Below are positions 1 to 59,630 of a DNA stretch of 64,000 nt, one piece after another. Position numbers and translations under genes: made by a program. Positions within the stretch are counted from its first letter, which is position 1; every line of letters begins with the position of its first letter. The stretch covers positions 1 through 64,000 of the forward strand of contig JAHDYR010000021.1 in NCBI GenBank assembly GCA_019828565.1. The letters are read 5' to 3'. This DNA is from Carpediemonas membranifera BICM (lineage: Eukaryota; Protista; Fornicata). A model generated the notes under the pieces. It did not search any database and was not told the origin of the DNA. It was given only the letters and a program-made list of their open reading frames with translations.

Positions 1-3000
1 CCAGCGCAACGAGTTGGAACGCTATCGCCGGGAGATTGGCTTAATCGCGAGCGCTAGCTAGGCACTAGCGATCTAGGGGATGTGCCGACTGTAGCTCCCC
101 AGGCGGGTGAGTGGCAGAAATCAAAAATGTCATTTTCATAAGTCAATCAGTTGATGCATTTGGGGGACTCCGCGCCTCTGCGTATAGTATACTAGGAGCC
201 CTGGCGATTAAGCCAGACATTAGTCCGGGGCATCCCAGCTCGTGATTTCAGGGGCGACCACTTTCGAAAAATGGGCACGACCCAGCGCAACGAGTTGGAA
301 CGCTATCGCCGGGAGATTGGCTTAATCGCGAGCGCTAGCTAGGCACTAGCGATCTAGGGGATGTGCCGACTGTAGCTCCCCAGGCGGGTGAGTGGCAGAA
401 ATCAAAAATGTCATTTTCATAAGTCAATCAGTTGATGCATTTGGGGGGACTCCGCGCCTCTGCGTATAGTATACTAGGAGCCCTGGCGATTAAGCCAGAC
501 ATTAGTCCGGGGCATCCCAGCTCGTGATTTCAGGGGCGACCACTTTCGAAAATGGGCACGACCCAGCGCAACGAGTTGGAACGCTATCGCCGGGAGATTG
601 GCTTAATCGCGAGCGCTAGCTAGGCACTAGCGATCTAGGGGATGTGCCGACTGTAGCTCCCCAGGCGGGTGAGTGGCAGAAATCAAAAATGTCATTTTTC
701 ATAAGTCAATCAGTTGATGCATTTGGGGGACTCCGCGCCTCTGCGTATAGTATACTAGGAGCCCTGGCGATTAAGCCAGACATTAGTCCGGGGCATCCCA
801 GCTCGTGATTTCAGGGGCGACCACTTTCGAAAAAAATGGGCACGACCCAGCGCAACGAGTTGGAACGCTATCGCCGGGAGATTGGCTTAATCGCGAGCGC
901 TAGCTAGGCACTAGCGATCTAGGGGATGTGCCGACTGTAGCTCCCCAGGCGGGTGAGTGGCAGAAATCAAAAAAATGTCATTTTTCATAAGTCAATCAGT
1001 TGATGCATTTTGGGGGACTCCGCGCCTCTGCGTATAGTATACTAGGAGCCCCTGGCGATTAAGCCAGACATTAGTCCGGGGCATCCCAGCTCGTGATTTC
1101 AGGGGCGACCACTTTCGAAAAATGGGCACGACCCAGCGCAACGAGTTGGAACGCTATCGCCGGGAGATTGGCTTAATCGCGAGCGCTAGCTAGGCACTAG
1201 CGATCTAGGGGATGTGCCGACTGTAGCTCCCCAGGCGGGTGAGTGGCAGAAATCAAAATGTCATTTTTCATAAGTCAATCAGTTGATGCATTTGGGGGAC
1301 TCCGCGCCTCTGCGTATAGTATACTAGGAGCCCTGGCGATTAAGCCAGACATTAGTCCGGGGCATCCCAGCTCGTGATTTCAGGGGCGACCACTTTCGAA
1401 AAAAATGGGCACGACCCAGCGCAACGAGTTGGAACGCTATCGCCGGGAGATTGGCTTAATCGCGAGCGCTAGCTAGGCACTAGCGATCTAGGGGATGTGC
1501 CGACTGTAGCTCCCCAGGCGGGTGAGTGGCAGAAATCAAAAATGTCATTTTCATAAGTCAATCAGTTGATGCATTTGGGGGGACTCCGCGCCTCTGCGTA
1601 TAGTATACTAGGAGCCCTGGCGATTAAGCCAGACATTAGTCCGGGGCATCCCAGCTCGTGATTTCAGGGGCGACCACTTTCGAAAAAAATGGGCACGACC
1701 CAGCGCAACGAGTTGGAACGCTATCGCCGGGAGATTGGCTTAATCGCGAGCGCTAGCTAGGCACTAGCGATCTAGGGGATGTGCCGACTGTAGCTCCCCA
1801 GGCGGGTGAGTGGCAGAAATCAAAAAAATGTCATTTTTCATAAGTCAATCAGTTGATGCATTTGGGGGACTCCGCGCCTCTGCGTATAGTATACTAGGAG
1901 CCCTGGCGATTAAGCCAGACATTAGTCCGGGGCATCCCAGCTCGTGATTTCAGGGGCGACCACTTTCGAAAAAAATGGGCACGACCCAGCGCAACGAGTT
2001 GGAACGCTATCGCCGGGAGATTGGCTTAATCGCGAGCGCTAGCTAGGCACTAGCGATCTAGGGGATGTGCCGACTGTAGCTCCCCAGGCGGGTGAGTGGC
2101 AGAAATCAAAAAAATGTCATTTTTCATAAGTCAATCAGTTGATGCATTTGGGGGACTCCGCGCCTCTGCGTATAGTATACTAGGAGCCCTGGCGATTAAG
2201 CCAGACATTAGTCCGGGGCATCCCAGCTCGTGATTTCAGGGGCGACCACTTTCGAAAAAAATGGGCACGACCCAGCGCAACGAGTTGGAACGCTATCGCC
2301 GGGAGATTGGCTTAATCGCGAGCGCTAGCTAGGCACTAGCGATCTAGGGGATGTGCCGACTGTAGCTCCCCAGGCGGGTGAGTGGCAGAAATCAAAAAAA
2401 TGTCATTTTTCATAAGTCAATCAGTTGATGCATTTGGGGGACTCCGCGCCTCTGCGTATAGTATACTAGGAGCCCTGGCGATTAAGCCAGACATTAGTCC
2501 GGGGCATCCCAGCTCGTGATTTCAGGGGCGACCACTTTCGAAAAAAATGGGCACGACCCAGCGCAACGAGTTGGAACGCTATCGCCGGGAGATTGGCTTA
2601 ATCGCGAGCGCTAGCTAGGCACTAGCGATCTAGGGGATGTGCCGACTGTAGCTCCCCAGGCGGGTGAGTGGCAGAAATCAAAAATGTCATTTTTCATAAG
2701 TCAATCAGTTGATGCATTTTGGGGGACTCCGCGCCTCTGCGTATAGTATACTAGGAGCCCTGGCGATTAAGCCAGACATTAGTCCGGGGCATCCCAGCTC
2801 GTGATTTCAGGGGCGACCACTTTCGAAAAAAATGGGCACGACCCAGCGCAACGAGTTGGAACGCTATCGCCGGGAGATTGGCTTAATCGCGAGCGCTAGC
2901 TAGGCACTAGCGATCTAGGGGATGTGCCGACTGTAGCTCCCCAGGCGGGTGAGTGGCAGAAATCAAAAATGTCATTTTCATAAGTCAATCAGTTGATGCA

Positions 3001-6000
3001 TTTGGGGGGACTCCGCGCCTCTGCGTATAGTATACTAGGAGCCCTGGCGATTAAGCCAGACATTAGTCCGGGGCATCCCAGCTCGTGATTTCAGGGGCGA
3101 CCACTTTCGAAAAAAATGGGCACGACCCAGCGCAACGAGTTGGAACGCTATCGCCGGGAGATTGGCTTAATCGCGAGCGCTAGCTAGGCACTAGCGATCT
3201 AGGGGATGTGCCGACTGTAGCTCCCCAGGCGGGTGAGTGGCAGAAATCAAAAATGTCATTTTCATAAGTCAATCAGTTGATGCATTTGGGGGGACTCCGC
3301 GCCTCTGCGTATAGTATACTAGGAGCCCTGGCGATTAAGCCAGACATTAGTCCGGGGCATCCCAGCTCGTGATTTCAGGGGCGACCACTTTCGAAAAAAA
3401 TGGGCACGACCCAGCGCAACGAGTTGGAACGCTATCGCCGGGAGATTGGCTTAATCGCGAGCGCTAGCTGAGGCACTAGCGATCTAGGGGATGTGCCGAC
3501 TGTAGCTCCCCAGGCGGGTGAGTGGCAGAAATCAAAAATGTCATTTTCATAAGTCAATCAGTTGATGCATTTGGGGGACTCCGCGCCTCTGCGTATAGTA
3601 TACTAGGAGCCCTGGCGATTAAGCCAGACATTAGTCCGGGGCATCCCAGCTCGTGATTTCAGGGGCGACCACTTTCGAAAAAAATGGGCACGACCCAGCG
3701 CAACGAGTTGGAACGCTATCGCCGGGAGATTGGCTTAATCGCGAGCGCTAGCTAGGCACTAGCGATCTAGGGGATGTGCCGACTGTAGCTCCCCAGGCGG
3801 GTGAGTGGCAGAAATCAAAAAAATGTCATTTTTCATAAGTCAATCAGTTGATGCATTTGGGGGACTCCGCGCCTCTGCGTATAGTATACTAGGAGCCCTG
3901 GCGATTAAGCCAGACATTAGTCCGGGGCATCCCAGCTCGTGATTTCAGGGGCGACCACTTTCGAAAAAAATGGGCACGACCCAGCGCAACGAGTTGGAAC
4001 GCTATCGCCGGGAGATTGGCTTAATCGCGAGCGCTAGCTAGGCACTAGCGATCTAGGGGATGTGCCGACTGTAGCTCCCCAGGCGGGTGAGTGGCAGAAA
4101 TCAAAAAAATGTCATTTTTCATAAGTCAATCAGTTGATGCATTTGGGGGACTCCGCGCCTCTGCGTATAGTATACTAGGAGCCCTGGCGATTAAGCCAGA
4201 CATTAGTCCGGGGCATCCCAGCTCGTGATTTCAGGGGCGACCACTTTCGAAAAATGGGCACGACCCAGCGCAACGAGTTGGAACGCTATCGCCGGGAGAT
4301 TGGCTTAATCGCGAGCGCTAGCTAGGCACTAGCGATCTAGGGGATGTGCCGACTGTAGCTCCCCAGGCGGGTGAGTGGCAGAAATCAAAAAAATGTCATT
4401 TTCATAAGTCAATCAGTTGATGCATTTGGGGGGACTCCGCGCCTCTGCGTATAGTATACTAGGAGCCCTGGCGATTAAGCCAGACATTAGTCCGGGGCAT
4501 CCCAGCTCGTGATTTCAGGGGCGACCACTTTCGAAAAATGGGCACGACCCAGCGCAACGAGTTGGAACGCTATCGCCGGGAGATTGGCTTAATCGCGAGC
4601 GCTAGCTAGGCACTAGCGATCTAGGGGATGTGCCGACTGTAGCTCCCCAGGCGGGTGAGTGGCAGAAATCAAAAAAATGTCATTTTCATAAGTCAATCAG
4701 TTGATGCATTTGGGGGACTCCGCGCCTCTGCGTATAGTATACTAGGAGCCCTGGCGATTAAGCCAGACATTAGTCCGGGGCATCCCAGCTCGTGATTTCA
4801 GGGGCGACCACTTTCGAAAAATGGGCACGACCCAGCGCAACGAGTTGGAACGCTATCGCCGGGAGATTGGCTTAATCGCGAGCGCTAGCTAGGCACTAGC
4901 GATCTAGGGGATGTGCCGACTGTAGCTCCCCAGGCGGGTGAGTGGCAGAAATCAAAAAAATGTCATTTTTCATAAGTCAATCAGTTGATGCATTTGGGGG
5001 GACTCCGCGCCTCTGCGTATAGTATACTAGGAGCCCTGGCGATTAAGCCAGACATTAGTCCGGGGCATCCCAGCTCGTGATTTCAGGGGCGACCACTTTC
5101 GAAAAAAATGGGCACGACCCAGCGCAACGAGTTGGAACGCTATCGCCGGGAGATTGGCTTAATCGCGAGCGCTAGCTAGGCACTAGCGATCTAGGGGATG
5201 TGCCGACTGTAGCTCCCCAGGCGGGTGAGTGGCAGAAATCAAAAAAATGTCATTTTCATAAGTCAATCAGTTGATGCATTTGGGGGACTCCGCGCCTCTG
5301 CGTATAGTATACTAGGAGCCCCTGGCGATTAAGCCAGACATTAGTCCGGGGCATCCCAGCTCGTGATTTCAGGGGCGACCACTTTCGAAAAAAATGGGCA
5401 CGACCCAGCGCAACGAGTTGGAACGCTATCGCCGGGAGATTGGCTTAATCGCGAGCGCTAGCTAGGCACTAGCGATCTAGGGGATGTGCCGACTGTAGCT
5501 CCCCAGGCGGGTGAGTGGCAGAAATCAAAAAAATGTCATTTTTCATAAGTCAATCAGTTGATGCATTTGGGGGGGACTCCGCGCCTCTGCGTATAGTATA
5601 CTAGGAGCCCCTGGCGATTAAGCCAGACATTAGTCCGGGGCATCCCAGCTCGTGATTTCAGGGGCGACCACTTTCGAAAAATGGGCACGACCCAGCGCAA
5701 CGAGTTGGAACGCTATCGCCGGGAGATTGGCTTAATCGCGAGCGCTAGCTAGGCACTAGCGATCTAGGGGATGTGCCGACTGTAGCTCCCCAGGCGGGTG
5801 AGTGGCAGAAATCAAAAAAATGTCATTTTCATAAGTCAATCAGTTGATGCATTTGGGGGACTCCGCGCCTCTGCGTATAGTATACTAGGAGCCCTGGCGA
5901 TTAAGCCAGACATTAGTCCGGGGCATCCCAGCTCGTGATTTCAGGGGCGACCACTTTCGAAAAAAATGGGCACGACCCAGCGCAACGAGTTGGAACGCTA

Positions 6001-6749
6001 TCGCCGGGAGATTGGCTTAATCGCGAGCGCTAGCTAGGCACTAGCGATCTAGGGGATGTGCCGACTGTAGCTCCCCAGGCGGGTGAGTGGCAGAAATCAA
6101 AAAAATGTCATTTTTCATAAGTCAATCAGTTGATGCATTTGGGGGACTCCGCGCCTCTGCGTATAGTATACTAGGAGCCCTGGCGATTAAGCCAGACATT
6201 AGTCCGGGGCATCCCAGCTCGTGATTTCAGGGGCGACCACTTTCGAAAAATGGGCACGACCCAGCGCAACGAGTTGGAACGCTATCGCCGGGAGATTGGC
6301 TTAATCGCGAGCGCTAGCTAGGCACTAGCGATCTAGGGGATGTGCCGACTGTAGCTCCCCAGGCGGGTGAGTGGCAGAAATCAAAAATGTCATTTTCATA
6401 AGTCAATCAGTTGATGCATTTGGGGGGACTCCGCGCCTCTGCGTATAGTATACTAGGATCCCTGGCGATTAAGCCAGACATTAGTCCGGGGCATCCCAGC
6501 TCGTGATTTCAGGGGCGACCACTTTCGAAAAATGGGCACGACCCAGCGCAACGAGTTGGAACGCTATCGCCGGGAGATTGGCTTAATCGCGAGCGCTAGC
6601 TAGGCACTAGCGATCTAGGGGATGTGCCGACTGTAGCTCCCCAGGCGGGTGAGTGGCAGAAATCAAAAATGTCATTTTCATAAGACAATCAGTTGATGCA
6701 TTTGGGGGGACTCCGCGCCTCTGCGTATAGTATACTAGGAGCCCTGGCG
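1..6749. repeat. Tandem array of ~281-286 bp unit, ~23.7 copies visible (probably continues past the left edge)
   Basis: Unit CCAGCGCAACGAGTTGG... recurs at 1, 282, 563, 847 ... 6543. Copies differ almost only in homopolymer length. The array stops abruptly at ...GAGCCCTGGCG 6749. Confidence 0.98.
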
Positions 6750-24582: not shown

Positions 24583-24674
24583 TGTGCTATTGAAGGGTCA
24601 AACAATGTGTTTACTGAGGAGGTTTAGACCCGTGGTGGTGTAAATGGTCCAAACTAGGGGATTTGAATGCATCA
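24583..24674 (-). repeat. 3' LTR (92 bp)
   Basis: Identical to 29138-29229; preceded on the minus strand by PPT GAAGGAGGGGGGGTAG. Confidence 0.95.
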
Positions 24675-24700
24675 CTACCCCCCCTCCTTCAATGCGATGT

Positions 24701-27700
24701 CTAATCCTGCCGAGTGCCATTTGATTGGCGGGCCGACATTCTGAGCTTCAAATCATCAAACCGCTTCATGGCTTCCTCTAGGGGTGTATTCACCTGCAGG
24801 TACTGCTGAAGTATCGCATTGCCTCTCATATCCTCGTCTGTTGGGTTTCTCCACGTGTCGTCTGCTGGTTCGTATCCTAACCAGCGCACCTTCACCTCTG
24901 GCGTCTTCATCACGTCCTTCTTGATCCTGTGCGTGACGATCTCTTTGATATACGTGTGCATACGGTCCTTGGCGCATTCTGCCTTCGCCTTCTCCTCATC
25001 CCAGTCGCCTTCTGCGAGCTTCAGATGCTTCACGTGCTTCTTATACGTCTTGTTCGTCTCGGGGTCCCTTATCACGAACGAGCTGGCGTTTCCAGGTGCC
25101 TTCTTGACCACCTGAAGTGGGCCTCTCCATCGTAGCTGGTACTTCCCTCTCTGTTCTGCATCCCTGTCGACCATGACCCACGCCTTGGCTGTGATACGGG
25201 TCGGTGTCCTCTTGTTGTGCTTGTCCTGTCTGGCCTTGGCCGCGTCGTACGTCTTCTTCGCCGCGTCCCTGCGCTGTTGAGCTCTCATCTTCTCGTTCCG
25301 GACCATCTTGTCAATGACGTCCGTAACGTCGGCTCTCTCCTGGTTCGACAGTGTCATCTTCCCTTCCCGCTCTGTGGACACCACTAGCTTCCAGGGTGAC
25401 GTGCCTGTCGTGGCAGATCTAGCCTGGTTGATGATGTTCTGAACCGCTGGCAGTAGGCCCATCCATTGCTTCGTGCCGCGCTGATGCATCTCGTCCCTGA
25501 GGTGGCGGTTCACTTCGCGATTCCTGCGCTCAACGATCCCATTCTCCTCGTGATGGTACGGGGTGGTCGTCTTCGCGCCCCCGCCTAGCTCTGCCGCGAA
25601 CGACTTGAACTCCTTCGAGTCGAACTGCCGTCCGCTATCGGTCACCCACTCGACCGGGGGCGGGAAGTGTGTGAGGTATCTTTCCCTGATTGCTCTGATG
25701 GTGGCGGCGGAGGTCACCGTCTTCAGTGGGCACAGGGTGACCCACCTCGTCGACTCCTCCACCAGCACCAGGATGTACCGGTAACCCTGGTCTGCCTCTG
25801 CCATGTTGATGGTGTCGGCGAACACGCGACTGAACGGCGACGCTGGCATGCGCAGCTGCTCCTGATATTGCTCGCGTGACCGGTGTTCGGCGTTCTTCTG
25901 GCACACGGGGCACTCCTTAACCATCCTCTGGACGTCCGTGTCCGCAGTGTCCCAGCGCAATCCCTTATCCTCGAGCTTCCACAGCGTCTGGTCAACCCCG
26001 TGGTGACCGGTGCCAGGTCCGTGAACGGACTTGAAGCGTGGCAGCTTCTGGGACTCGGGTATGGCCGGGAACGTGCCCTCCTCTTCGGGCTCGGCGTCAA
26101 GGGTGTCGCCCTCGTCTGTCCCGGCTGCTTCCTCGGTGTCGCTTTCGTCTGCCTCGTCGCGCTCGCGGTCAGGCTGTCCTGCCGCCTCTTCGCGGAACCG
26201 AACTCTCGGCTCGTCGGCGGCGACTTCTTCCGACTCTTCCTCCGCTGCGTCGACTGCACACATCACGGACACGATCGCACCCCTGCTGCTCTGGTGTCAG
26301 GCTCTCGGCTTCTGCGCGGGGCATTCTGGACAGGCCGTCCGCGACCGTATTAGACTTACCAGGCACGTGGGTGATGCTGAACTTGAGGTTGCCCAGCTCA
26401 AGTGCCCAGCGCTGCACCATGGGGTCGACGTTGCCCCCACGTGTACACGAGGTTACGGTGGTCCGTGAACATCTCAAACTCCCCTTGTGGCTAGGAACCG
26501 TCTCATCTTCCTCGTGGCCGCTATGATGGCGAATGCCTCCTTGCGGTAGGTGCTCCACTTGCGCTGGCTTGCTGTCAGGGCCTTGGAGAAGAACATCACA
26601 GGTCGCTTCGACCCGTCGTCCTCGACTCTGACCAGCACTGCGCCGACACCGGTGTCGGACGCGTCGGTGAACAGCTGTAGGCGGTCGTCAGGGCCCGGTG
26701 TGACCAACAGTGTGGGGGAGGTGACGATCTTCTTCAGTCTCTTGAACGCCTCTCTCTGGGGGTCGCCCCACACGAACGTCTGGCCCTTGATCTCCAGCTT
26801 GCGGATCGGCTCGGTGATGTCCGCGTAGCCGGGGATGAACTGGGAGAAGAAGTTGAAGATGCCCAATGTGGACCTGACGTCACTCACGTTTGTCGGGTCG
26901 GGCAGCTCCTGGACACCCTGGACGCGCCATGGGGGATGCGCTTTCCCTCCGCCGACACTATCCATCCGAGGTACTCCACCTCCGTCAACCCGAAAAAGCA
27001 CTTGTTCTTGTTGAGCTTCAGCTTCTTCTCTCGCACCCGGTCCATCACCCGCATCAGGTTCGCCTGGTACTCTTCCCAGGTCGACCCATAGACGATGATG
27101 TCGTCCACGTACACAAGACACGCCGTGCCCAGCATGTCCGCGAAAGCCTCCTCTAAGGCCTCTTGCATATGGCCAGCCGCGGTGGCAAGGCCGAACGGCA
27201 TCGTAGTGTAGGTATAGTGCCCCTTGGAGTACGTGAACGCCAGGTACTCCTGTGTGTCGGGGTGCACCGGGACCTGATGGAAGGCCTTGCTGAGGTCAAG
27301 TGCTGCGAAGTACTTGTTGCCCCTCAGCCTCTCGATCAGCTCTTCCGTCGACGGCAAGTCGTGCTGAGTCATGGACGCCAGGAGCTCGTTCAGTGGCGAG
27401 TAGTCCATGCACGGCCGCCACGTCCCGGCCTTCTTCCGCACCATGACCACTGAGCTGCTCCAGGGAGACTTGGTTGGGATGATGATCCCGCTTTCCTCCA
27501 GCTTCTGCATCTCTGACCGGAGTTCATCCTCCACCTGTCTTGGGAACCTTCGGGGCAGACGGAAGTAGGGTCGGGCGTCCTTCTTCAGCGTGACCTTGAA
27601 CGGCTTAAGGTCTGCTGGTTCGCCTGCATCGCCGAAGCAGTCGCTGTATCTCTCGGCCCAGTCCTCTGTGAGCTTGGAGATGACCTGGATGGGGTCTGCT

Positions 27701-29124
27701 TCGGTGTCAAGGTTGCGGTTGATTAGGCCGAGGGAGTCAATCACCTCCATGTTGATGAGGAACGACTCGGCCTTGTCCATCGCATACCAGGTCGGCGTCG
27801 CGGTGACCTCTCTGTCGAGGTGGAGGGTGATCGGCACATCTGACAACACTCGGTAGACCCTCCTCATCGACTCGTCAGCCAAGCGGACTGTCTCGCCCCG
27901 CGTGGCGATCTTCAGTCCCTTCTCGACGGCCCAGTCCCTCGGCACGACGCTGAACGAGGAGCAGGTGTCCATGCGGACGATCAACTCTTCGCCCAGCAGA
28001 CTGGCCTTCTCCTGCCAGATAGTCTTGGACGCTAACATAAAACAGAAAGGATACTCAGATGGCTTTACAACTGTGCACTGGTGCGACTTGTGGCCGAACT
28101 CGCCGCACCTGAAGCACTTCGGCTCCTCGTGTGGGCAGTCGGCCGAGTCGTGACCCTTTTCGCCGCAGTTGAAGCAGCCGCGGCCCCCTTGCCGCCGCTC
28201 AGGCTTGGCCCCCTCGGCCGCGCCGTCATTGCGTCTGCGCTCTCCCGTCCTCGCTGGCATCTTCCGCTCCTCTCTCGGCTTGCTCTGCAGTGACTCGAGC
28301 TGCTTCTGTAGGGCCGCGAGCCGGCTGCTCGGCACCAGGTCAAACTCTCGCATGGCATCTGTTCGGGCCCGTAGGTACTTTGCTATGACCTTCAACGACT
28401 TCGCGACTGTTGACTTGGAAAGAACAACAGAGCGAAGAGACGATGCGATCGTCTCGTCATCGAGGCTCGCCAGAACGATCTCCTGGAGCTCTCTAGCATC
28501 CAGGGATCCGACCTTCTCGAACAGATCTACCATATCCGTGAACACATGGCGGTAACGGGTGAAAGAGGTCTCACGGAGCTTGCGAAGCTCGCGGTACGCG
28601 CGCTGAAGACTGATATTGGTTAGTGTGGCCTCAGCCATCACCACCCAGCGCTCATCGCGCTTCCTCCTCGTTGTCTTCGCCTCCTTCTTCTCTTGGTCTT
28701 GAGCCATGATGTACCGGAGCAAAGCGTCGTCCCGGGCGGTCGTCTTGCCGCTTGTCTTCTTCTTCCGGGCCGGGTTAGCGATGAGTGTGCTCCGGGCGTC
28801 ATCCTCGGAGTCGCTCTGGGCGTGCGCGTCTTCGCCGCCCCTGCTGCTGTCGCTACCCTCGTTGGCGCTGAACATCTCCTCGTCGTCTTCACTCGAGCTG
28901 TCAGAGCTGTCATCGGAGCTTTCGTCGTCCTCCAGAGCTTGGTATGCGTCCTTGATACTTGTTCTCACTTTCGCGTCGATGCACTCGAAGAGGGTCTTCG
29001 GCTTGACCTCATCTTCAGCATAGAGTGCGTAGCTCATGCGGAACCTCACCCAGTCGGCTGCAGTGTGCCGGAGATACTTCGGGTAAGTCCCTTTTGGGTC
29101 GTCGTCATCGTCATCCTTCTTCAT
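24701..29124 (-). CDS. Gag-Pol polyprotein, interrupted by ~4 homopolymer frameshifts
   Basis: Two CCHC knuckles, protease MDTCS, RT LDLSKAFHQ/MPFGL/YVDD, RNase H TDAS/TDHRNL/ADGLSR, integrase GHHG..CPVC, TDSG, ENGIVER, chromodomain VKVRWLGYEPADDTW. Confidence 0.92.
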
Positions 29125-29137
29125 GCGTAGTAATTAC

Positions 29138-29229
29138 TGTGCTATTGAAGGGTCAAACAATGTGTTTACTGAGGAGGTTTAGACCCGTGGTGGTGTAAAT
29201 GGTCCAAACTAGGGGATTTGAATGCATCA
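29138..29229 (-). repeat. 5' LTR (92 bp)
   Basis: Identical to 24583-24674. Confidence 0.95.
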
Positions 29230-29379: not shown

Positions 29380-31286
29380 AACTTTACACAGCTCTCGCGT
29401 CAATGGTCCGGCTGCACCCGCGGCACGTGACCTGCCTCCGGTTCGCGCTGACTGTGGCCGACCGATGGCAGTGGGGGCACGTGACGGTGCGCTGCCTCGC
29501 GACGCCCTCGGGCAGGTCGACTGTCTGGCGCGGCGCCATCTCGCACTGGCCGCCGTTGTGGGCCATGTGCTCTTCCTGGTTGGCCACGCGGAGCAGGCAC
29601 TTGTGGCAGAAGTCCTGGCCGCACGGGCACTTCGACATCTTGCAGCTGTCCAGGTCGCCTTCGCGCGAGGTCAGCTCGCCGCACGTGGGGCAGCGGCGGA
29701 TGACGGGGACGTCCACAGCGGCGCCTCTGCCGAGCGTGACCAGGCGGCACGTCTGCAGGATGTCGTTCTGCTCGACGAGCGTCCTGATCTCGGCGCGCGA
29801 GTATGCCTGCTGGCGCCGCGGGATGACGTAGAAGTCGGCTGCCGCGCCTGCTGCGGCAGGGGCCGAGTCGAGCACCGCCTGGCGCATCTGGCCGGCGTCC
29901 TCCAGACGAGGGAGGCGGGCGGCGCCCGTGCAGTCGGCGTACACGCGGTGGTGGTCGTGGAGGGTCACGCCGACGGAGCCGGGCTGGGGGAACTGGCCGC
30001 CGAACACGTGGAAGGCGAAGCGGCGGCGCGTCTCGTCGTCCTCGAGCACGGCACGGAGGGCGTCCTGCACGCCCTGGCTGTCCGCGGGGAAGCGCAGCGG
30101 GGCGAGCACGGCGGCGACCGTGAGCGGGTTGGGGCGCACAAGCAGGGCCCGCAGCTGGGCGGCCGTCAGCGCGAGGACCTTCTCGCTGAAGCGCGTCTTC
30201 GCGGCCATGCCGTTGCGGACGATCTGCATGCGCTCGGCGAAGCGGCGTCTCACCTCGTCGCCGTACGCCTTGAGGTCGCCCTCGAAGCCCTCGAGCGGAC
30301 ACGCGGCCGCAGCCTCCGCAACAGACCGCTGCAGCGCCCGGGCGACGATGGGCATCAGCGCTCCCAGGTCGACGCGGCCGCCCGTGAGCGCGACGAGCCA
30401 GGCGTCGCTGACCATGTCCGCGGGCAGGGTGATGCCGTCGAGCAGCATGAGCTGCAGCACGCGGCCGAGCCCCAGCAGGACCGGGCGCAGGTCGTCGAGC
30501 GGCATGTCGAGGGCGTCGGGCGTGAAGACCAGCGTGCCCTCGCGGAAGATGGGCACAGGTAACTCCATGCCCCCGACGGCCTGGCGGACGGCCACATGCG
30601 GCAGCTCGACGACCAGGTCGGGCAGGGCCTTCGCGGAGTCGTCGCCCGAGAGCGTCGCGGGGATGGCGAACAGGTCCTCCTCGCACGCGGCGATGCTGGC
30701 CAGGCTCGCCGAAACGTCGTCAGCGAGGGCGATGTCGACCGGGTCCTCGCGGAACATCTGCAGGCGCACGCGGTCGATGTCGTCGACGAAGGCGTGGGCG
30801 TTCGCGAACCTGCTGCTCGCCGCGTTGAGGTCGACCTCAGGGTCCAGCTCGTTGGCAGCGGCAGCGAAGAGGCCGTCGGCCAGGGCGCGGCGGACGGACC
30901 AGCGGGCCTCGGGGTGGGTGGCGAGCATGCCGGAGAGCACGTCGCGCAGGGCGTCGGGGACGGCGACGGTGGCGAGCAGGGCTGTGCAGAGAGTGTCGTT
31001 GTTGACGGCCGAGGCGGATGCGAGGTCGCCCATGAGAAGAGCGAGCAGCCTCTGGCAGAAGGCGGGGTAGTCCGGCGCCATGGCCCCGAGCATCGTCAGG
31101 CCCGCGTGGTAAACGTCGGCGGTCTGCTGCTCGCGGTGGCTCAGCTTCTTCCCTGCATTGCGCGCGGCGATCTCCTCGGGCGCGCTGAAGGCGAGCGTGC
31201 CGATGTTGACTCCGGTCGCGGTCGCGTTCACGGCGTCCATGTTCGAGGCCGTCTCGAAGTCGACGAGCACGGGGTGGCCCTCGCGC

Positions 31287-31319
<33 letters not shown>

Positions 31320-34300
31320 CAGACGCCCGCGCTGTGCAGGTCGTGGATCGCGGTGAGCAGGCCGTGGAGCAGTCTGCGCAGGCTGTCGGGCGAGTCGGCT
31401 GGGGCGTCGCGCAGATGGCGCTCGAGGCGCTCCATGACGATCGTGCAGGTCTGCTCGGCGCTGTCGACGAGGACGAAGTGCAGCCTGGGCACGGCGGGGC
31501 TGTGCGTCATGCGCGACAGGATGCCCGCCTCGCGGTCGCAGAGCTTGCGATGGTGCTCGGTGTCGAGCTTGAAGGTCTTGGCGATGAAGGTCTGGCCGTC
31601 GCGGGTCACGATCTGGCACAGCGCTCTGTTCTCGCTGACGGTCGACTCCACGGTGAAGTCGGACAGCGACAGGTCGGCGCGCATCTCGGGGAGGTCCATG
31701 AGGTGGGCCAGCCCCATCTCGCGCAGCTCGGCAAAGAGGCTGGCCGACGGCGCGGTGAGGGCCTCCAGCTCGGGGCAGAGCCGGACGAGCTGCGGCGTGC
31801 GGCGGGAAAGAACATCCTTCATGTGTGCCAGCTTGACTATGACGGAGTCTAGTTCCTTCTGCGCTTCGTCAAGCTTGCCGACGCCGTGTTTGCGTTTCCT
31901 GCTGAAGAAGTCGACATCTTCTTCGAGATCTTCGGCCTTGCTCTTCAGGTGCTGGTAGTCGCCCAGCGACCGGAGCTGCGCAGTGATGGCGTCGGCCTCG
32001 GCGAACCCAGCCAGGTGGTCCTCAGCCTCGGCGGCCAGGCCAGTCAACTGGCGAATGGTGCGCTCCTCAGCGCTCGTGTCCTCGCCAAGCTCCTTCCGAC
32101 TGAGGGCACACTGCCACGTCACGCGGACGGCCGGCTGGAGGAAGGCGCGGAGCGTGGCGTACCTGGCCTGCAGCTCGGGCGCGAGGGTGGGGAAGTCGAC
32201 GACCTCGTTGTCAGCGGCCTCGAGCATGCGGGCCATCTCGTCGAGCGAGGGGAGAGACTCGAAGGCGGCGGCGCCGTCGACGATGGCCGAGGCCGCCTGG
32301 TAGGCAGCGCTGACAGCGGCGATCCTGGCCTCGAGCGCCTCGACCCCGGCCCTGGCCTGGGCGATGACCGCCTCGTACTCGGCGATGCGGGTCTCTGGGT
32401 GGCGTCTGGCCGGGCCGAGTCGGCTGATGAGACCAGCGGGCGACGGAGTGTCGTCAGTGTCAAGTGTTGGCATGGCGACCGAGAGCAGGGGGTGGCCCTC
32501 GAGCGTGGCGCTCAGCACAGCAGCCTTGTCAGCAGCGGCGAAGGTCATGATGGCCTGGAAGGACGAAATGGTGGTCCTCGCCTTAGATAGTTCTGCCCGG
32601 AGACTGGCGTTCTCATCGTGACTCACATCCAATCTCTCACTCCAAAGCTTGCAGTTCGCCTGTGATGTGATTGCGTCAACGGCATCATTATGCGGACCTT
32701 CGGCCACAAACAGTCCACCCGCCATTCTGATCATGGACGAAATCGGGGCGGCCATGGCGATGCGGAGATCGCGTGGGGCGACCTGCGATGAGGCCACGCG
32801 AGAGACGACCTGCCTCAGCTGGCCGATAGTCGCGTCAACCAGGACAACGTCCGAGACGGCGCCCGAGCAGAAGTCGGCAACAATCTGGTCGCACCTGCAT
32901 TCGTTGAAGAGCTTGATGAGCTTGGCCAGCTCGGCGTCCTTGGAGTCTATCTTGGCGAACTTGTCCTCCAGCCAGACTCTGGCGGCGGGGCGGGTCAGCG
33001 TCATCGTGAAGGAGCGGGGCAGACCAGTGGCGAGGAAGTGGAGGAGGATGCGAGCGGTGTCGCTGATGAGTACTTCTGAGCCGTCAGGGTCGATGGCGAT
33101 GTCGGCGTCGGGGGCGACTGGGCTGGAGCAGAGCTGGTTGACGGTGGCCAGGAACTGGGGGGTGCGGGTGAGTGCGCTCCAGACCTTGGCTGTCGTGTCG
33201 CTGGATCCAGACACGATCGTGGTGCCGTCTCTGGAGAACGCGACACCATTCACCCCGCCATTGTGCCCCGAAAACGTCCTGATCAGCGCCCCGGTCGCGA
33301 CGTCCCACTGCATGATGGTGTTGTCGCCAGACCCAGACACCAGAGTCCTGCCGTCGGGGGAGAAGGCGAGGCTCCACACAATATCGGTGTGCCCATCAAG
33401 GGTCCGAGTCAGCTGGTCGGTTGCGGAGTCCCAGAACTTGATGAAGCCAACATTGTCTCCGGATGCGATGATGGTGCCGCTTGGTGATAACGCAACGTTA
33501 CAGACTGGGTTGCCATGGTTCATGGTCCTGATGCATTCGCCAGTAGTGGTGCTCCATTGGTTGATCGTGCCGTCAACACTTCCAGTGTAAATGGTCGAGC
33601 CATCAGGGGAGATGGCCACGCCATGCACGGAATTATTATGCCCTGTTAGTGTCAGCCTGCACTGCCCTGTCTCGACGTCCCAGACCTTGGCGGTTTTGTC
33701 ATACGATCCGGAGACCAGGGTGCGGCCATCGGACGAGAATGCAACACAGTGCACAACATCAGTGTGCCCGCTTTGGGTCTTAGTCACCCGACCTGTGGCT
33801 ACGTTCCAGAGTTTGATGAGACCGTCATCGCCACCATATGCGATGGTCGACCCGTCCGGCGACACGGCATCATAAAAAGCTTCATTTCTAAGTTTCATGG
33901 TCCTGATACAACGACCAGTGGCCGAGTCCCACTGCTTGATTGTGCCATCATCTGATGAAGTGATGATGGTGCCGTCGGGGGCAGTGGCGACACCGAACAG
34001 TGCGTATATGTGCCCAGTCAGTGTCCTGATACACGTATCCTTTCCAATTTCACTTGCGGGCCGCGTGTTCCATGCCTCGAGTGCGAACTCAACCTGGACA
34101 TCGTCATGGTCGGCCTCGAGTCTGCCATCGACCATCGTGACGGTAACAGCGGGCTCAATGAGCTCTATCGTCAGAGTCTCGGGTTCTATACTCTCGCTGA
34201 GTAGGTACTGGATGACCTGCTCGAGGTCCTGGACGGTGATTGGTGTCTCGCCTCGCTTGCGGATCTGGATGCCCTCGGGGCCGGGGTGCTTGGAGCTTGC

Positions 34301-34629
34301 GGTGTGGATATGAGTATCTACTGCTCTGCAGTCCTTGCTGCGTGAGAATGCGGCCTCAATACGTACCACTGGCTGTGTAATCACGGAATTGGCTGATCAA
34401 ACGCGTCAGGCGTGCTGTGTAAAGGAATCGCGATGCAGTAGTGTTGCTGCTGTTGCTACACACCATCTGTGTGAGAATCGCTGGAAACCGCGAACCTTGG
34501 GCATCGTCGCTCCATCGCTTGCCTCGATAACTCGACAAAGACATCGAAGTGAATGCGCTGGTCAGGGGTGAGTCGACGCCGTGCCAGCCCAGGAACTGCA
34601 CAGTGACGCAGGACAGTGGCTCTAGACAG
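29380..34629. repeat. Arm A of a ~5.25 kb inverted segmental duplication (partner 49554-54805)
   Basis: Near-identical reverse complement, including ~245 bp upstream of the ORF. Confidence 0.95.
29384..34384 (-). CDS. WD40 - coiled coil - protein kinase - HECT-like - IBR/RING2-like - Zn ribbon protein (copy 1; start codon uncertain)
   Basis: ~7 WD40 repeats; kinase IAK, HRDLKPEN, DFE, APE; HECT-like LGRVL, RRRFAFHVFG, YADCTGAARLP; CPTC...DSCKMSKCPCGQDFCHKC. Confidence 0.85.
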
Positions 34630-49553: not shown

Positions 49554-52500
49554 CTGTCTAGAGCCACTGTCCTGCGTCACTGTGCAGTTCCTGGGCTGGC
49601 ACGGCGTCGACTCACCCCTGACCAGCGCATTCACTTCGATGTCTTTGTCGAGTTATCGAGGCAAGCGATGGAGCGACGATGCCCAAGGTTCGCGGTTTCC
49701 AGCGATTCTCACACAGATGGTGTGTAGCAACAGCAGCAACACTACTGCATCGCGATTCCTTTACACAGCACGCCTGACGCGTTTGATCAGCCAATTCCGT
49801 GATTACACAGCCAGTGGTACGTATTGAGGCCGCATTCTCACGCAGCAAGGACTGCAGAGCAGTAGATGTACAGATCCGCACCGCAAGAGCTGAGCGCCCC
49901 GGCCCCGAGGGCATCCAGATCCGCAAGCGAGGCGTCACACCAATCACCGTCCAGGACCTCGAGCAGGTCATCCAGTACCTACTCAGCGAGAGTATAGAAC
50001 CCGAGACTCTGACGATAGAGCTCATTGAGCCCGCTGTTACCGTCACGATGGTCGATGGCAGACTCGAGGCCGACCATGACGATGTCCAGGTTGAGTTCGC
50101 ACTCGAGGCATGGAACACGCGGCCCGCAAGTGAAATTGGAAAGGATACGTGTATTAGGACACTGACTGGGCACATATACGCACTGTTCGGTGTCGCCACT
50201 GCCCCCGACGGCACCATCATCACTTCATCAGATGATGGCACAATCAAGCAGTGGGACTCGGCCACTGGTCGTTGTATCAGGACCATGAAACTTAGAAATG
50301 AAGCTTTTATGATGCCGTGTCGCCGGACGGGTCGACCATCGCATATGGTGGCGATGACGGTCTCATCAAACTCTGGAACGTAGCCACAGGTCGGGTGACT
50401 AAGACCCAAAGCGGGCACACTGATGTTGTGCACTGTGTTGCATTCTCGTCCGATGGCCGCACCCTGGTCTCCGGATCGTATGACAAAACCGCCAAGGTCT
50501 GGGACGTCGAGACAGGGCAGTGCAGGCTGACACTAACAGGGCATAATAATTCCGTGCATGGCGTGGCCATCTCCCCTGATGGCTCGACCATTTGCACTGG
50601 AAGTGTTGACGGCACGATCAACCAATGGAGCACCACTACTGGCGAATGCATCAGGACCATGAACCATGGCAACCCAGTCTGTAACGTTGCGTTATCACCA
50701 AGCGGCACCATCATCGCATCCGGAGACAATGTTGGCTTCATCAAGTTCTGGGACTCCGCAACCGACCAGCTGACTCGGACCCTTGATGGGCACACCGATA
50801 TTGTGTGGAGCCTCGCCTTCTCCCCCGACGGCAGGACTCTGGTGTCTGGGTCTGGCGACAACACCATCATGCAGTGGGACGTCGCGACCGGGGCGCTGAT
50901 CAGGACGTTTTCGGGGCACGATGGCGGGGTGAATGGTGTCGCGTTCTCCAGAGACGGCACCACGATCGTGTCTGGATCCAGCGACACGACAGCCAAGGTC
51001 TGGAGCGCACTCACCCGCACCCCCCAGTTCCTGGCCACCGTCAACCAGCTCTGCTCCAGCCCAGTCGCCCCCGACGCCGACATCGCCATCGACCCTGACG
51101 GCTCAGAAGTACTCATCAGCGACACCGCTCGCATCCTCCTCCACTTCCTCGCCACTGGTCTGCCCCGCTCCTTCACGATGACGCTGACCCGCCCCGCCGC
51201 CAGAGTCTGGCTGGAGGACAAGTTCGCCAAGATAGACTCCAAGGACGCCGAGCTGGCCAAGCTCATCAAGCTCTTCAACGAATGCAGGTGCGACCAGATT
51301 GTTGCCGACTTCTGCTCGGGCGCCGTCTCGGACGTTGTCCTGGTTGACGCGACTATCGGCCAGCTGAGGCAGGTCGTCTCTCGCGTGGCCTCATCGCAGG
51401 TCGCCCCACGAGATCTCCGCATCGCCATGGCCGCCCCGATTTCGTCCATGATCAGAATGGCGGGTGGACTGTTTGTGGCCGAAGGTCCGCATAATGATGC
51501 CGTTGACGCAATCACATCACAGGCGAACTGCAAGCTTTGGAGTGAGAGGTTGGATGTGAGTCACGATGAGAACGCCAGTCTCCGGGCAGAACTATCTAAG
51601 GCGAGGACCACCATTTCGTCTCTCCAGGCCATCATGACCTTCGCCGCTGCCGACAAGGCTGCTGGGCTGAGCGCCACGCTCGAGGGCCACCCCCTGCTCT
51701 CGGTCGCCATGCCAACACCTGACACTGACGACACTCCGTCGCCCGCTGGTCTCATCAGCCGACTCGGCCCGGCCAGACGCCACCCAGAGACCCGCATCGC
51801 CGAGTACGAGGCGGTCATCGCCCAGGCCAGGGCCGGGGTCGAGGCGCTCGAGGCCAGGATCGCCGCTGTCAGCGCTGCCTACCAGGCGGCCTCGGCCATC
51901 GTCGACGGCGCCGCCGCCTTCGAGTCTCTCCCCTCGCTCGACGAGATGGCCCGCATGCTCGAGGCCGCTGACAACGAGGTCGTCGACTTCCCCACCCTCG
52001 CGCCCGAGCTGCAGGCCAGGTACGCCACGCTCCGCGCCTTCCTCCAGCCGGCCGTCCGCGTGACGTGGCAGTGTGCCCTCAGTCGGAAGGAGCTTGGCGA
52101 GGACACGAGCGCTGAGGAGCGCACCATTCGCCAGTTGACTGGCCTGGCCGCCGAGGCTGAGGTCCACCTGGCTGGGTTCGCCGAGGCCGACGCCATCACT
52201 GCGCAGCTCCGGTCGCTGGGCGACTACCAGCACCTGAAGAGCAAGGCCGAAGATCTCGAAGAGGATGTCGACTTCTTCAGCAGGAAACGCAAACACGGCG
52301 TCGGCAAGCTTGACGAAGCGCAGAAGGAACTAGACTCCGTCAAAGTCAAGCTGGCACACATGAAGGATGTTCTTTCCCGCCGCACGCCGCAGCTCGTCCG
52401 GCTCTGCCCCGAGCTGGAGGCCCTCACCGCGCCGTCGGCCAGCCTCTTTGCCGAGCTGCGCGAGATGGGGCTGGCCCACCTCATGGACCTCCCCGAGATG

Positions 52501-52862
52501 CGCGCCGACCTGTCGCTGTCCGACTTCGCCGTCGAGTCGACCGTCAGCGAGAACAGAGCGCTGTGCCAGATCGTGACCCGCGACGGCCAGACCTTCTTCG
52601 CCAAGACCTTCAAGCTCGACACCGAGCACCATCGCAAGCTCTGCGACCGCGAGGCGGGCATCCTGTCGCGCATGACGCACAGCCCCGCTGCGCCCAAGCT
52701 GCACTTCGTCCTCGTCGACAGCGCCGAGCAGACCTGCACGATCGTCATGGAGCGCCTCGAGCGCCATCTGCGCGACGCCCCAGCCGACTCGCCCGACAGC
52801 CTGCGCAGACTGCTCCACGGCCTGCTCACCGCGATCCACGACCTGCACAGCGCGGGCGTCTG

Positions 52863-52895
<33 letters not shown>

Positions 52896-54805
52896 GCGCG
52901 AGGGCCACCCCGTGCTCGTCGACTTCGAGACGGCCTCGAACATGGACGCCGTGAACGCGACCGCGACCGGAGTCAACATCGGCACGCTCGCCTTCAGCGC
53001 GCCCGAGGAGATCGCCGCGCGCAATGCAGGGAAGAAGCTGAAGCATCGCGAGCAGCAGGCAGCCGATGTCTACCACGCGGGCCTGACGATGCTGGCGCTG
53101 ATGACGAAGGACTATACGGATTTCTGCAGGGACATCCTCTCTCTCAGCAACAACAGGGACTTGCTCGAGAGTTCGACCGCCAACGACGACACTCTCTGCG
53201 CCGCCCTGCTCGCCACTGTTGCCGTCCCCGACGCCCTGCGCGACGTGCTCTCCGGCATGCTCGCCACCCACCCCGAGGCCCGCTGGTCCGTCCGCCGCGC
53301 CCTGGCCGACGGCCTCTTCGCTGCCGCTGCCAACGAGCTGGACCCTGAGGTCGACCTCAACGCGGCGAGCAGCAGGTTCGCGAACGCCCACGCCTTCGTC
53401 GACGACATCGACCGCGTGCGCCTGCAGATGTTCCGCGAGGACCCGGTCGACATCGCCCTCGCTGACGACGTTTCGGCGAGCCTGGCCAGCATCGCCGCGT
53501 GCGAGGAGGACCTGTTCGCCATCCCCGCGACGCTCTCGGGCGACGACGCCGCGAAGGCCCTGCCCGACCTGGTCGTCGAGCTGCCGCGCGTGGCCGTCCG
53601 CCAGGCCGTCGGGGGCATGGAGTTACCTGTGCCCATCTTCCGCGAGGGCACGCTGGTCTTCACGCCCGACGCCCTCGACATGCCGCTCGACGACCTGCGC
53701 CCGGTCCTGCTGGGGCTCGGCCGCGTGCTGCAGCTCATGCTGCTCGACGGCATCACCCTGCCCGCGGACATGGTCAGCGACGCCTGGCTCGTCGCGCTCA
53801 CGGGCGGCCGCGTCGACCTGGGAGCGCTGATGCCCATCGTCGCCCGGGCGCTGCAGCGGTCTGTTGCGGAGGCTGCGGCCGCGTGTCCGCTCGAGGGCTT
53901 CGAGGGCGACCTCAAGGCGTACGGCGACGAGGTGAGACGCCGCTTCGCCGAGCGCATGCAGATCGTCCGCAACGGCATGGCCGCGAAGACGCGCTTCAGC
54001 GAGAAGGTCCTCGCGCTGACGGCCGCCCAGCTGCGGGCCCTGCTTGTGCGCCCCAACCCGCTCACGGTCGACGCCGTGCTCGCCCCGCTGCGCTTCCCCG
54101 CGGACAGCCAGGGCGTGCAGGACGCCCTCCGCGCCGTGCTCGAGGACGACGAGACGCGCCGCCGCTTCGCCTTCCACGTGTTCGGCGGCCAGTTCCCCCA
54201 GCCCGGCTCCGTCGGCGTGACCCTCCACGACCACCACCGCGTGTACGCCGACTGCACGGGCGCCGCCCGCCTCCCTCGTCTGGAGGACGCCGACCAGATG
54301 CGCCAGGCGGTGCTCGACTCGGCCCCTGCCGCAGCAGGCGCGGCAGTCGACTTCTACGTCATCCCGCGGCGCCAGCAGGCATACTCGCGCGCCGAGATCA
54401 GGACGCTCGTCGAGCAGAACGACATCCTGCAGACGTGCCGCCTGGTCACGCTCGGCAGAGGCGCCGCTGTGGACGTCCCCGTCATCCGCCGCTGCCCCAC
54501 GTGCGGCGAGCTGACCTCGCGCGAAGGCGACCTGGACAGCTGCAAGATGTCGAAGTGCCCGTGCGGCCAGGACTTCTGCCACAAGTGCCTGCTCCGCGTG
54601 GCCAACCATCGAGAGCACAATGCCCACTACGGCGGCCAGTGCGAGATGGCGCCGTGCCAGACAGTCGACCTGCCCGAGGGCGTCGCGAGGCAGCGCACCG
54701 TCACGCGCCCCCACTGCCATCGGTCGGCCACAGTCAGCGCGAACCGGAGGCAGGTCACGTGCCGCGGGTGCAGCCGGACCATTGACGCGAGAGCTGTGTA
54801 AAGTT
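49554..54805. repeat. Arm B of the inverted duplication
   Basis: Reverse complement of 29380-34629 with a few divergent patches. Confidence 0.95.
49799..54801 (+). CDS. WD40-kinase-HECT-like-IBR/RING2-like protein (copy 2); 1-nt frameshift in the T-run at ~50308
   Basis: Same domains as copy 1; T4 here versus T5 in copy 1. Confidence 0.82.
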
Positions 54806-57428: not shown

Positions 57429-57662
57429 TCACAGAAGAGCAAAGTCTGCGGTCCAATCCCGGAACTGGATCTCCTTATCTGCGAAGGAAACAATATACTC
57501 CACGGATGGGAGCTTATCTCTGCGCAGGAGGGACTTAACGGCCTCAAAGCGAGAACTCGACGTGTCGAAGGCCTCGAACGCTCTATCCACGGTACGAAGC
57601 GCATTGCGTCGAATAGCAAGATCTTCCCTTGTCCAAACCATCTCAGTGCTCTTCTTCGCCAT
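57429..57662 (-). CDS. Small hypothetical protein downstream of the Fanzor (MAKKSTEM...), possibly spliced further
   Basis: ORF preceded by a 16-bp motif also found in the Fanzor 5' region; possible GTGAGT donor at its end. Confidence 0.35.
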   Translation of the reverse strand: MAKKSTEMVWTREDLAIRRNALRTVDRAFEAFDTSSSRFEAVKSLLRRDKLPSVEYIVSFADKEIQFRDWTADFALL

Positions 57663-57699
57663 GTTTTGAAGACTGTGTCCGCGCAGGATTAGAATACTT

Positions 57700-57830
57700 G
57701 AGTCCAAAACACACAGTGATCCAAGCAGCATCAGGATCGCAGTGTGGTTCATCATACTCTATCAATCGTGCGCTGCATATCACGCGCGCTGCAGCGCGTG
57801 TTTGCTCAACTTAGCAAGTTAATGATAGCG
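57700..57830 (-). ncRNA. Candidate Fanzor omegaRNA scaffold
   Basis: Three stem-loops directly 3' of the Fanzor stop codon. Confidence 0.35.
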
Positions 57831-59630
57831 AGGAAGAGCACCTCTCTGGGAGTCGTAGTGGAAAGGAGATTGCTCTATCTGATCTGAAGTTGCATCGAAT
57901 GTGCACCAAAGGATGTTCTCGCTGGCGCTCTTATCTCGGTGAGAGAGATTGAGAAGTATGTCTCTGCTCGGGATGCCGACGTAGCCGTTCAACGCGCCAT
58001 GGAGCTCCCTCGCACGCTGGATTCTGGCAGAACATGGTGCGGCGTGTGTGCACCACACGTCTGAAGTGTGCTTTGCAGTGTGGGCACACGATGGAAGTGC
58101 GGAATTCCGAGACCATCGTGACACTCATGACGACGTTGTGCCGGAACATGATGCCAGTGAGAGCTCGAGCAAAGTGGCGGTACGGAGCACAGGAGGGAGT
58201 GCCGGCGGAACCGAACAGTGCAGCCCCATACGCGACTTCGAGATGAATGGGCTCCGGGGGCGCCCGCCGAGATCATCCAGGAGTTGACGTCCAGCCCGGG
58301 CGAAGTGCTTCAGGCGCAGACAGTGATTGGCAAAAGTCGCACGGCGGAAACACTTTCTCGTCCCCTCGTTGATGATCTGAACGATGTTCTCATGGACAAA
58401 CCTAATCGACTGTTTGAGAGCCTCTAGACTTGTCGTTTTGAACGATGCTGCGCTCATATTCACGCGGAAAGAGGGGGTGGCAGTGTAGCCACACTTAGCG
58501 AGTACGCCAGATACACTCTGCCCGTCTGGGCGGCGGATCGTGTAGCCGCCCAGCGACCGAGCACCAGGGTCGAAGCCCATGCGAGCTTGAATGTCCGGGG
58601 CAGGAGTAGCCTCGGCGTCATCCTGACCGAGCCGAGCCCGCTTGTTATTGCTACCCTTTTTGTACGTGGGCCGGTCAGCCACCCGACCGCCACGGTATTT
58701 CTCGCGACCCACCCAAACGGTCACAGCAGCAGAGACCCCGTCAGTCTTCGCAGAGAGCACTCTGCGAAGCTTGGTGATGTCACCGTGATCACGCTCGTAT
58801 CTATCAACCTGCTCGTCGGTCAAGTTACTCTTCGCTGACCAATCCCGATAGACACGGAGGCGCCTCTTCATCGCTGGGGTGAGCGCTGTTACTCCGCGCT
58901 CGATGGTCATGAACCCAGGCCTGACCGGTGCCATCGGCACGAACGGAACGAGCTTCGGCTCTGGCAGGGCCTGACTGAGCTCGAGGTTCACGGCACGAGT
59001 GAGTGTGACCAGCTTGGTCACTGCAGCACTCATGCGCGTGACGCACGACAGCACGCCGACGAGAGCCTCGGCCACGGTACCAGTGCGACCCACCCGCTGC
59101 TCCTCGGGCAATGCATGCATTTGACGATGATGCATGCCATGATCGGCGGCTATGGTGGCAACCTCAGTGTCGAGCTCGCCTAGGGTGTCGAGAAAATCCT
59201 GTCAAACACCCGGCCGATCATGGAGGAGCGGACGCACCCGTTCTAATCCAGCACGAAGACGGGTCAGGTACCCGGGTGACGCGCGCGAGAGCCAGACCCG
59301 GGTGGCTGTGGAGTACTCGCCCAACCAGCTCTGAAATGGCGCTGCAATTCCAACGTAGGCTTCCCTGAAGTCCCGGACGAGTGGGGTTATGTCAGGGTCC
59401 CTCCACATCGCCAGGTCGCCAATCCACCTGCACCGATCCGCTGCCTTTGCCTTGGACTCTCTTCCCTTGGCAATGCTGACGATCTTTTGAAGACTGTGTC
59501 TTAAAGTGCACAGGGTGCATGAACTATGTCGAAAAGAGGTCCTGGGTTGTTGAGTGCTCTGCGCGGTATACCTAGCTTTACCTGGCTTTCTGGCGGAATT
59601 CTCGCCAGAGTCGTTTTGGAGTTGTGACAT
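57819..59630 (-). CDS. Fanzor (TnpB-derived RuvC RNA-guided nuclease); interrupted by TGA at 59202-59204 and frameshifts at ~58258 and ~58008
   Basis: RuvC-I MGFDPGARSL; RKCFRRATF; VAYGAALF; RuvC-II VSEFRTS; Zn finger CPHC...CQNPAC; RuvC-III HRDKSASENIL. Confidence 0.8.

Follow-up and report, generated by a model that had tools for sequence, protein, structure and literature searches.

A dead, 5'-truncated Fanzor1-type unit with LTR-type ends in Carpediemonas membranifera, probably placed by a Ty3/gypsy integrase

Near the right end of the 64,000-nucleotide stretch of Carpediemonas membranifera DNA that we analyzed (the window), four minus-strand open reading frames together resemble one RNA-guided nuclease of the Fanzor type. 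Does this locus conceal an intact gene broken up by sequencing errors, as an earlier note on the sequence proposed, and what brought it there? The minus strand does contain all of the Fanzor motifs named in that note, in the order given and across three frames: the Asp codon of FDPG at 58571-58569, the RKCF helix, YGA, the Glu codon of SEFR at 58107-58105, CPHC, CQNPAC and the Asp codon of HRDK at 57935-57933. The in-frame TGA (59204-59202) and two frame changes are there as well. The locus is laid out as follows.

59498..59511, minus strand: host target motif, a 13/14 match to the family consensus GTGCASTTTATGWC, 3 nt ahead of the duplicated site
59485..59500, minus strand: left copy of a 16-bp duplication; the usual 5-bp site is 59494-59490, and the remainder comes from the irregular left joint
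59205..59484, minus strand: first surviving Fanzor piece, beginning at about residue 86 of the 642-aa form
59202..59204, minus strand: in-frame TGA, common to 1/28 other copies
58262..59201, minus strand: main Fanzor piece with TDG (Asp 58742) and DPG (Asp 58571), 92% identity to the uninterrupted copy
57967..58261, minus strand: Fanzor piece after a 1-nt loss in a C run, with YGA, the catalytic Glu (58107) and the zinc finger
57819..57966, minus strand: Fanzor piece after a 2-nt loss in an AG repeat, with the RuvC-III Asp (57935) and the stop
57674..57818, minus strand: candidate omega-RNA scaffold, predicted only, with two hairpins and a long stem closed by the terminal repeat
57674..57715, minus strand: right terminal repeat, mini-LTR-like, ending ...CACA
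57664..57679, minus strand: right copy of the 16-bp duplication, its first 6 nt overlapping the element end; the predicted guide region starts here
57429..57662, minus strand: 77-codon host ORF without a Pfam match, starting 11 nt past the element end

The Fanzor sequence does not reach back to 59630 as had been assumed. Positions 59630-59486 are host flank and the first ~48 codons of the earlier reading are non-Fanzor; the window copy begins at 59485, ~610 bp into a 2.44-kb body, and ~85 true N-terminal codons are absent. The frame changes had been placed in C/G runs, which is correct for the first (58261, in a C run) but not for the second (~57966), a 2-nt loss in an AG repeat. Nor is their attribution to sequencing errors demonstrated: the C loss is common to 9/37 copies and the AG loss is private to the window copy. 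The suggested check against short reads gave a divided answer: public contigs contain only intact alleles at the lesions, but a single copy among ~100 is not resolvable in them. The same contigs match both junctions of the window copy without differences, and bridging extends over 41 letters at the right junction and only 29 at the left, just below the tool's 31. Because its left end and ~85 N-terminal codons are missing, the window copy is dead, whether the frameshifts are errors or not. Rather than a hidden intact gene, it is a 5'-truncated member of a Fanzor family with more than 100 copies in C. membranifera, most of them broken. The proposed search of the genome for an intact paralog did find one, copy L014, with an uninterrupted 642-codon gene.

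To characterize the protein, the pieces in the window were searched separately and L014 served as the full-length stand-in. Pfam, NCBIfam and PDB sequence searches yielded no significant match, the best Pfam match being a weak one to TNB (E 0.016), and homologue searches together with a metagenome scan found no sequence relatives outside Carpediemonas. The RuvC triad (D392, E547, D605) is invariant in both subfamilies of the family, and the catalytic residues are intact in 35/35, 38/38 and 34/37 copies. E547 occupies the rearranged position six residues ahead of the zinc finger (C554) in both subfamilies, an arrangement for which we took the published Fanzor1 definition (PMC13565253). Equally invariant is T334-D335-G336, i.e., the TDG motif of the WED domain that marks Fanzor1 (PMC10711439). 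Two AlphaFold models were of low confidence (pLDDT 36 and 33); in the Atlas, TnpB/Fanzor clusters of eukaryotes and giant viruses ranked first (features 0.97; TM 0.5-0.59). The DPG and TDG motifs, the rearranged Glu and these look-alikes bear out the earlier suggestion of a Fanzor1-like nuclease in an anaerobic flagellate, and on its sequence the protein is almost certainly a Fanzor1-type nuclease with predicted activity. Selection on the gene is mild: among copies, pN/pS was 0.5 for shared variants and 0.72 for rare variants. A literature search retrieved no paper on Fanzor in Carpediemonas, and the genome paper does not mention Fanzors. One copy (P0001) is publicly annotated as a cytosine deaminase and two others as transposase.

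The genome search covered 24.2 Mb in 69 contigs and returned at least 46 matches by DNA and 122-150 by protein. The family forms two subfamilies, one at 90-97% identity and one at ~50%. Our detailed sample consisted of the 38 copies closest to the window copy, a choice that is not random and favors its near-full-length relatives; for subfamily 2 and the copies with the longest insert A (see below), the comparison used coordinates and proteins. Of the 38 copies, 17 have internal deletions, with short microhomology or filler. The window copy and L016 share a usual right joint, a broken left end and a 10-16-nt duplication. Some of the ~50% copies (C1:1116113, C9:208628) have no mini-LTR pattern nearby, and a third end type is likely for these. 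At G000:C8 ~147900-158200, Fanzor fragments form a tandem array, each with a diverged A-like piece. Pieces of the family also occur at 95-99% identity and low depth in two runs labelled as other organisms (X3, X4).

The ends of the unit point to its carrier. The ~2.44-kb body has a 34-bp direct repeat at both ends which, with its outer bases, becomes a terminal repeat of ~41 bp that starts with TGTG and ends with CACA, the unit as a whole ending TGT...ACA. Both ends are preserved in 17 copies, and 13 of these show an exact 5-bp target duplication; other duplication lengths from 4 to 9 and cross-copy controls gave 0. The terminal inverted repeats and transposase of DDE cut-and-paste elements are absent, as only TGTG/CACA is inverted and the sole ORF of the unit is the nuclease. 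An alignment of the 41-bp repeat runs along a 43-bp mini-LTR (0/2000 shuffles), of which solo copies with 5-bp duplications also occur; over its first 31-32 nt, this mini-LTR is identical to the end of a 92-bp Ty3/gypsy LTR. A Ty3/gypsy element with such LTRs lies in the window itself.

24583..29229, minus strand: Ty3/gypsy element of chromovirus type with identical 92-bp LTRs and a 5-bp duplication; candidate helper class

Its gag-pol is spread over three frames and includes a chromodomain integrase; immediately downstream of the element come a motif-like site and a 714-codon host ORF that starts at 24526. The earlier statement that no transposase lies next to the Fanzor gene is true, but the carrier is recognizable from its ends, with a candidate helper class in the same window. 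A polypurine tract ending in GTAG adjoins the inner left repeat of the Fanzor unit on the strand opposite to Fanzor (by eye), and the purine tract beside the 3' LTR of the window's Ty3 element is placed likewise; the retro-transcript would therefore be antisense to Fanzor. In subfamily 2, Ty3-type LTR starts were found less than 3 kb upstream of 13 Fanzors (0.2 by chance), and mini-LTR ends flank at least seven on both sides, as read by eye from the pattern only.

Several observations fit the Ty3 relation less well. In subfamily 1 the left and right repeats differ constantly, both over the initial 11 nt and through insert A, and this counts against an LTR route because two-jump LTR replication would erase such differences. 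In favor of such a route, the outer allele of the two terminal repeats was concordant in 15/23 copies versus 9.0 when shuffled (p 0.003), but the inner allele was not (p 0.35), and shared ancestry could explain the outer concordance. Inspection by eye revealed a tRNA-type primer-binding site in neither the unit nor the window's Ty3 element. No autonomous element with the subfamily-1 left end was found, its 52 exact matches including no pair 4-6 kb apart. We regard the carrier as one that, from its sequence features, works like a non-autonomous LTR-type element; since its two repeats did not prove identical, we stop short of calling it a canonical TRIM. Solo 43-bp or 92-bp LTRs with 5-bp duplications are nested in or beside Fanzor units at L017, L057 and L060, which is repeated use of the same sites.

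The left repeat is uninterrupted in five copies. In most subfamily-1 copies it contains an inverted insert of 5-475 bp (insert A), which probably encodes the C-terminus of an RLE-type non-LTR protein, with CCHC and RLE motifs seen by eye and no Pfam match, and which matches the C-termini of 1391-1505-codon frames at 37-41%. Its outer end is fixed and its inner end variable, with sister copies differing in length, and in 26/38 copies the body starts exactly at the inner repeat. Such asymmetry is better explained by the 3' end of an RNA that was joined to a piece, variable in length, of another template than by DNA deletions. We found no RT-bearing or complete parent of insert A, three places having an upstream part with a longest frame of 392 codons. 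Twin priming on a single RNA, from a parent carrying A directly upstream of the body, was rejected as an exact-pattern search returned no such junction.

Insertion sites share a feature of the host DNA. A motif close to GTGCASTTTATGWC occupies positions -22 to -9 from the left end of Fanzor units, occurring at 13/20 left ends versus 0/33 right ends; it is one-sided and has no mirror. At 35 places a Ty3-type LTR start follows the motif core, in 33 cases after a 13-nt spacer (reversed-pattern control, 0); the core was found at the other end of the mini-LTR only twice. The spacer is 12 nt in most subfamily-1 units. All insertions are oriented relative to the motif and lie 12-13 nt from it. Only 3 of ~15 full Ty3 copies have the strict motif, which we counted against the Ty3 reading although by our own arithmetic <0.01 would be expected, and the window's Ty3 element has only a weak match with a 10-nt spacer. 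On the Fanzor strand, a host ATG opening an ORF of 250 or more codons lies within 35 nt downstream in 13/38 copies versus 7% at random (p 1e-6), compared with 1/22 on the other flank. The downstream host genes are ordinary ones, among them a DEAD-box helicase, a kinase and diphthamide synthase. We infer that a host factor probably binds the target, a promoter-type site; since the motif stands ahead of only a few of the window's genes, it is no general promoter. The first 45 nt of the subfamily-1 left end (L053 35-80) also hold the motif core beyond shuffles (1/300), possibly as a site for the same host factor.

Three stems are predicted in the 3' region of the unit, with the terminal repeat closing the last of them, a z of about -1.6 and no compensatory changes; Rfam contained no match to this region. 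With the last stem closed in this way, the guide, which in Fanzor1 is 14-15 nt of flank, would be the host leader. No TAM was seen directly 5' of the insertion, where positions -8 to -1 are unconserved and the conserved motif lies instead at -22 to -9. A fixed internal guide matching the target motif was rejected, the last 150 nt of the unit showing no excess over shuffles. The right flank of L011 (oriented 3317-3328) starts with the same 12 nt, of guide length, as that of L029, through either read-through RNA or gene conversion.

Our main reading, to which we give a probability of roughly 0.6, is that the window copy is a dead, 5'-truncated, non-autonomous LTR-type element, inserted by a Ty3 integrase, whose sole cargo is a Fanzor1 gene with a predicted omega-RNA at the right end. 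Fanzor units at large were quite likely inserted by a Ty3/gypsy integrase of this genome, kept close to the promoter-like host motif. On balance, we also favor a unit that travels as an RNA antisense to Fanzor and undergoes reverse transcription in trans, starting at its own polypurine tract, the left (U5-like) end variably coming from another template. Ty3 proteins would package and reverse transcribe this unit, and Ty3 integrase would insert it just inside host promoters. The window copy itself would be a one-ended event, its right end placed at the usual site and its broken left end joined by repair. In retroviral one-ended events, integrase joins a single end and repair takes care of the other. 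The joints of the window copy and L016 are as one-ended integration would give; a literature search on such events found nothing.

Three other vehicles were weighed. A cut-and-paste DNA element with an unrecognised integrase-like DDE transposase (Ginger/IS481 type) and LTR-derived ends, in which Fanzor would perform restorative homing after excision and the deletions would be abortive gap repair, is improbable in our estimation. TGT...ACA ends and 5-bp duplications suit such enzymes too, the two ends are non-identical and the deletions in 17/38 copies bear microhomology or filler. The inverted repeat is, however, merely 4 bp, the ends are direct repeats homologous to LTRs and accompanied by a purine tract, the inner repeat is the exact starting point of the body in 26/38 copies while insert A varies, and the target geometry is common to Ty3 LTRs. 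Target-primed reverse transcription by an RLE non-LTR retrotransposon, with a Fanzor RNA and an RLE RNA primed at one cut on opposite strands, would account for insert A as an inverted, variably 5'-truncated CCHC-RLE 3' end whose length differs between sisters, for truncated copies that retain the right joint and have 10-16-nt duplications, and for the 12 nt of another copy's right flank in one copy. Such twin priming was our first reading and was demoted once the Ty3 relation was tested; we now hold it to be highly improbable, as no RT-bearing parent of A and no same-strand A-to-body junction were found, the left repeat is empty in five copies, and subfamily 2 has the same targeting with Ty3-type ends. 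Just as improbable is Fanzor itself cutting new sites, into which repair would copy the unit with no integrase involved. The truncated Fanzor copies of Chlamydomonas CRe-1/2/3, with variable 7-19-bp duplications (PMC3627910), offer a precedent, and the AT-rich TTTA core recalls Fanzor1 TAMs (PMC13565253), yet complete copies have exact 5-bp duplications and CA ends, Ty3 elements and solo LTRs without Fanzor occupy the same site, and the right 150 nt match the motif no better than shuffles.

What the nuclease does within the Ty3-carried unit is a separate matter. Tentatively, an upstream host promoter may drive Fanzor and omega-RNA, the host 5' leader serving as guide, and the nuclease may cut the empty allele in the zygote so that repair copies the element in, i.e., allelic homing without excision. 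The host is predicted to be haploid, probably sexual and without NHEJ (PMC8516963), and zygote cutting of an empty allele could therefore spread the element without excision; the unconserved TAM beside the guide counts against this. That Fanzor is instead a passenger without present function, in a vehicle that amplifies anything between its ends, seems to us rather unlikely. It would suit a family in which most copies are broken, rare variants have a pN/pS of 0.72 and the guide has no adjacent TAM, but two subfamilies 50% apart retain all catalytic and zinc residues, and for shared variants pN/pS is 0.5. This passenger view bears only on what the cargo does and would suit a Ty3 carrier as well. 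The least probable proposal is nuclease-directed retro-integration, in which the Fanzor ribonucleoprotein would help to choose the Ty3 integrase site with the TTTA core as TAM; Fanzor could then act in trans on Ty3 elements and solo LTRs. A simpler account of the motif is a host promoter factor, and a fixed guide that matches the motif was not found.

The unit resembles known Fanzor1 nucleases and elements (SpuFz1/SPu-1, SfAV Fanzor1; Bao and Jurka 2013, PMC3627910; Yoon et al. 2023, PMC10711439) in its ~640-aa protein with DPG, TDG and a Glu six residues before the zinc finger, in its non-autonomous ~2-2.5-kb format with the nuclease only, and in a three-stem 3' RNA, here predicted, that includes the terminal repeat (PMC10711439). 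It differs from them in having direct, mini-LTR-like ends instead of inverted repeats, a variable 5-bp duplication with no adjacent TAM, and no relatives found outside Carpediemonas. With TRIM and other non-autonomous LTR elements it shares short direct repeats (TG...CA), the 5-bp duplication, a purine tract, the absence of gag/pol and solo repeats; unlike these, it carries a conserved RNA-guided-type nuclease in antisense, its repeats are only 41-43 bp, the subfamily-1 ends are non-identical and no primer site was found by eye. Like S. pombe Tf1 with Sap1 and yeast Ty3 with TFIIIB (PMC7175516), it inserts upstream of genes, next to a promoter or a site that host protein binds, but with a strong orientation bias and at a motif, for a putative host factor, that precedes only few window genes. 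Chlamydomonas CRe-1/2/3 (PMC3627910) similarly have 5'-truncated copies, longer variable duplications and a fixed place after a T-rich motif, although their ends are those of Helitrons and their full-length copies lack duplications, in contrast to the LTR-like ends and exact 5 bp seen here. A 2026 review reported no evidence for retrotransposon-like carriers of Fanzor nucleases. The present family, with its LTR-type ends, its more than 100 copies in two diverged subfamilies and its preserved catalytic residues, puts this matter to a direct test: Fanzors would either pay by allelic homing or serve another role. It also provides a very divergent metamonad Fanzor1, on which we found no paper and for which many loci offer natural guides, and it adds a new instance of Ty3 targeting that is oriented and promoter-proximal.

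Elsewhere in the window, positions 1-6749 at the contig end are a tandem array of 23.7 copies of a 286-bp unit, 98% identical, and near-identical long WD40-kinase genes at 29387-34396 (minus strand) and 50302-54798 (plus strand) form an inverted pair.
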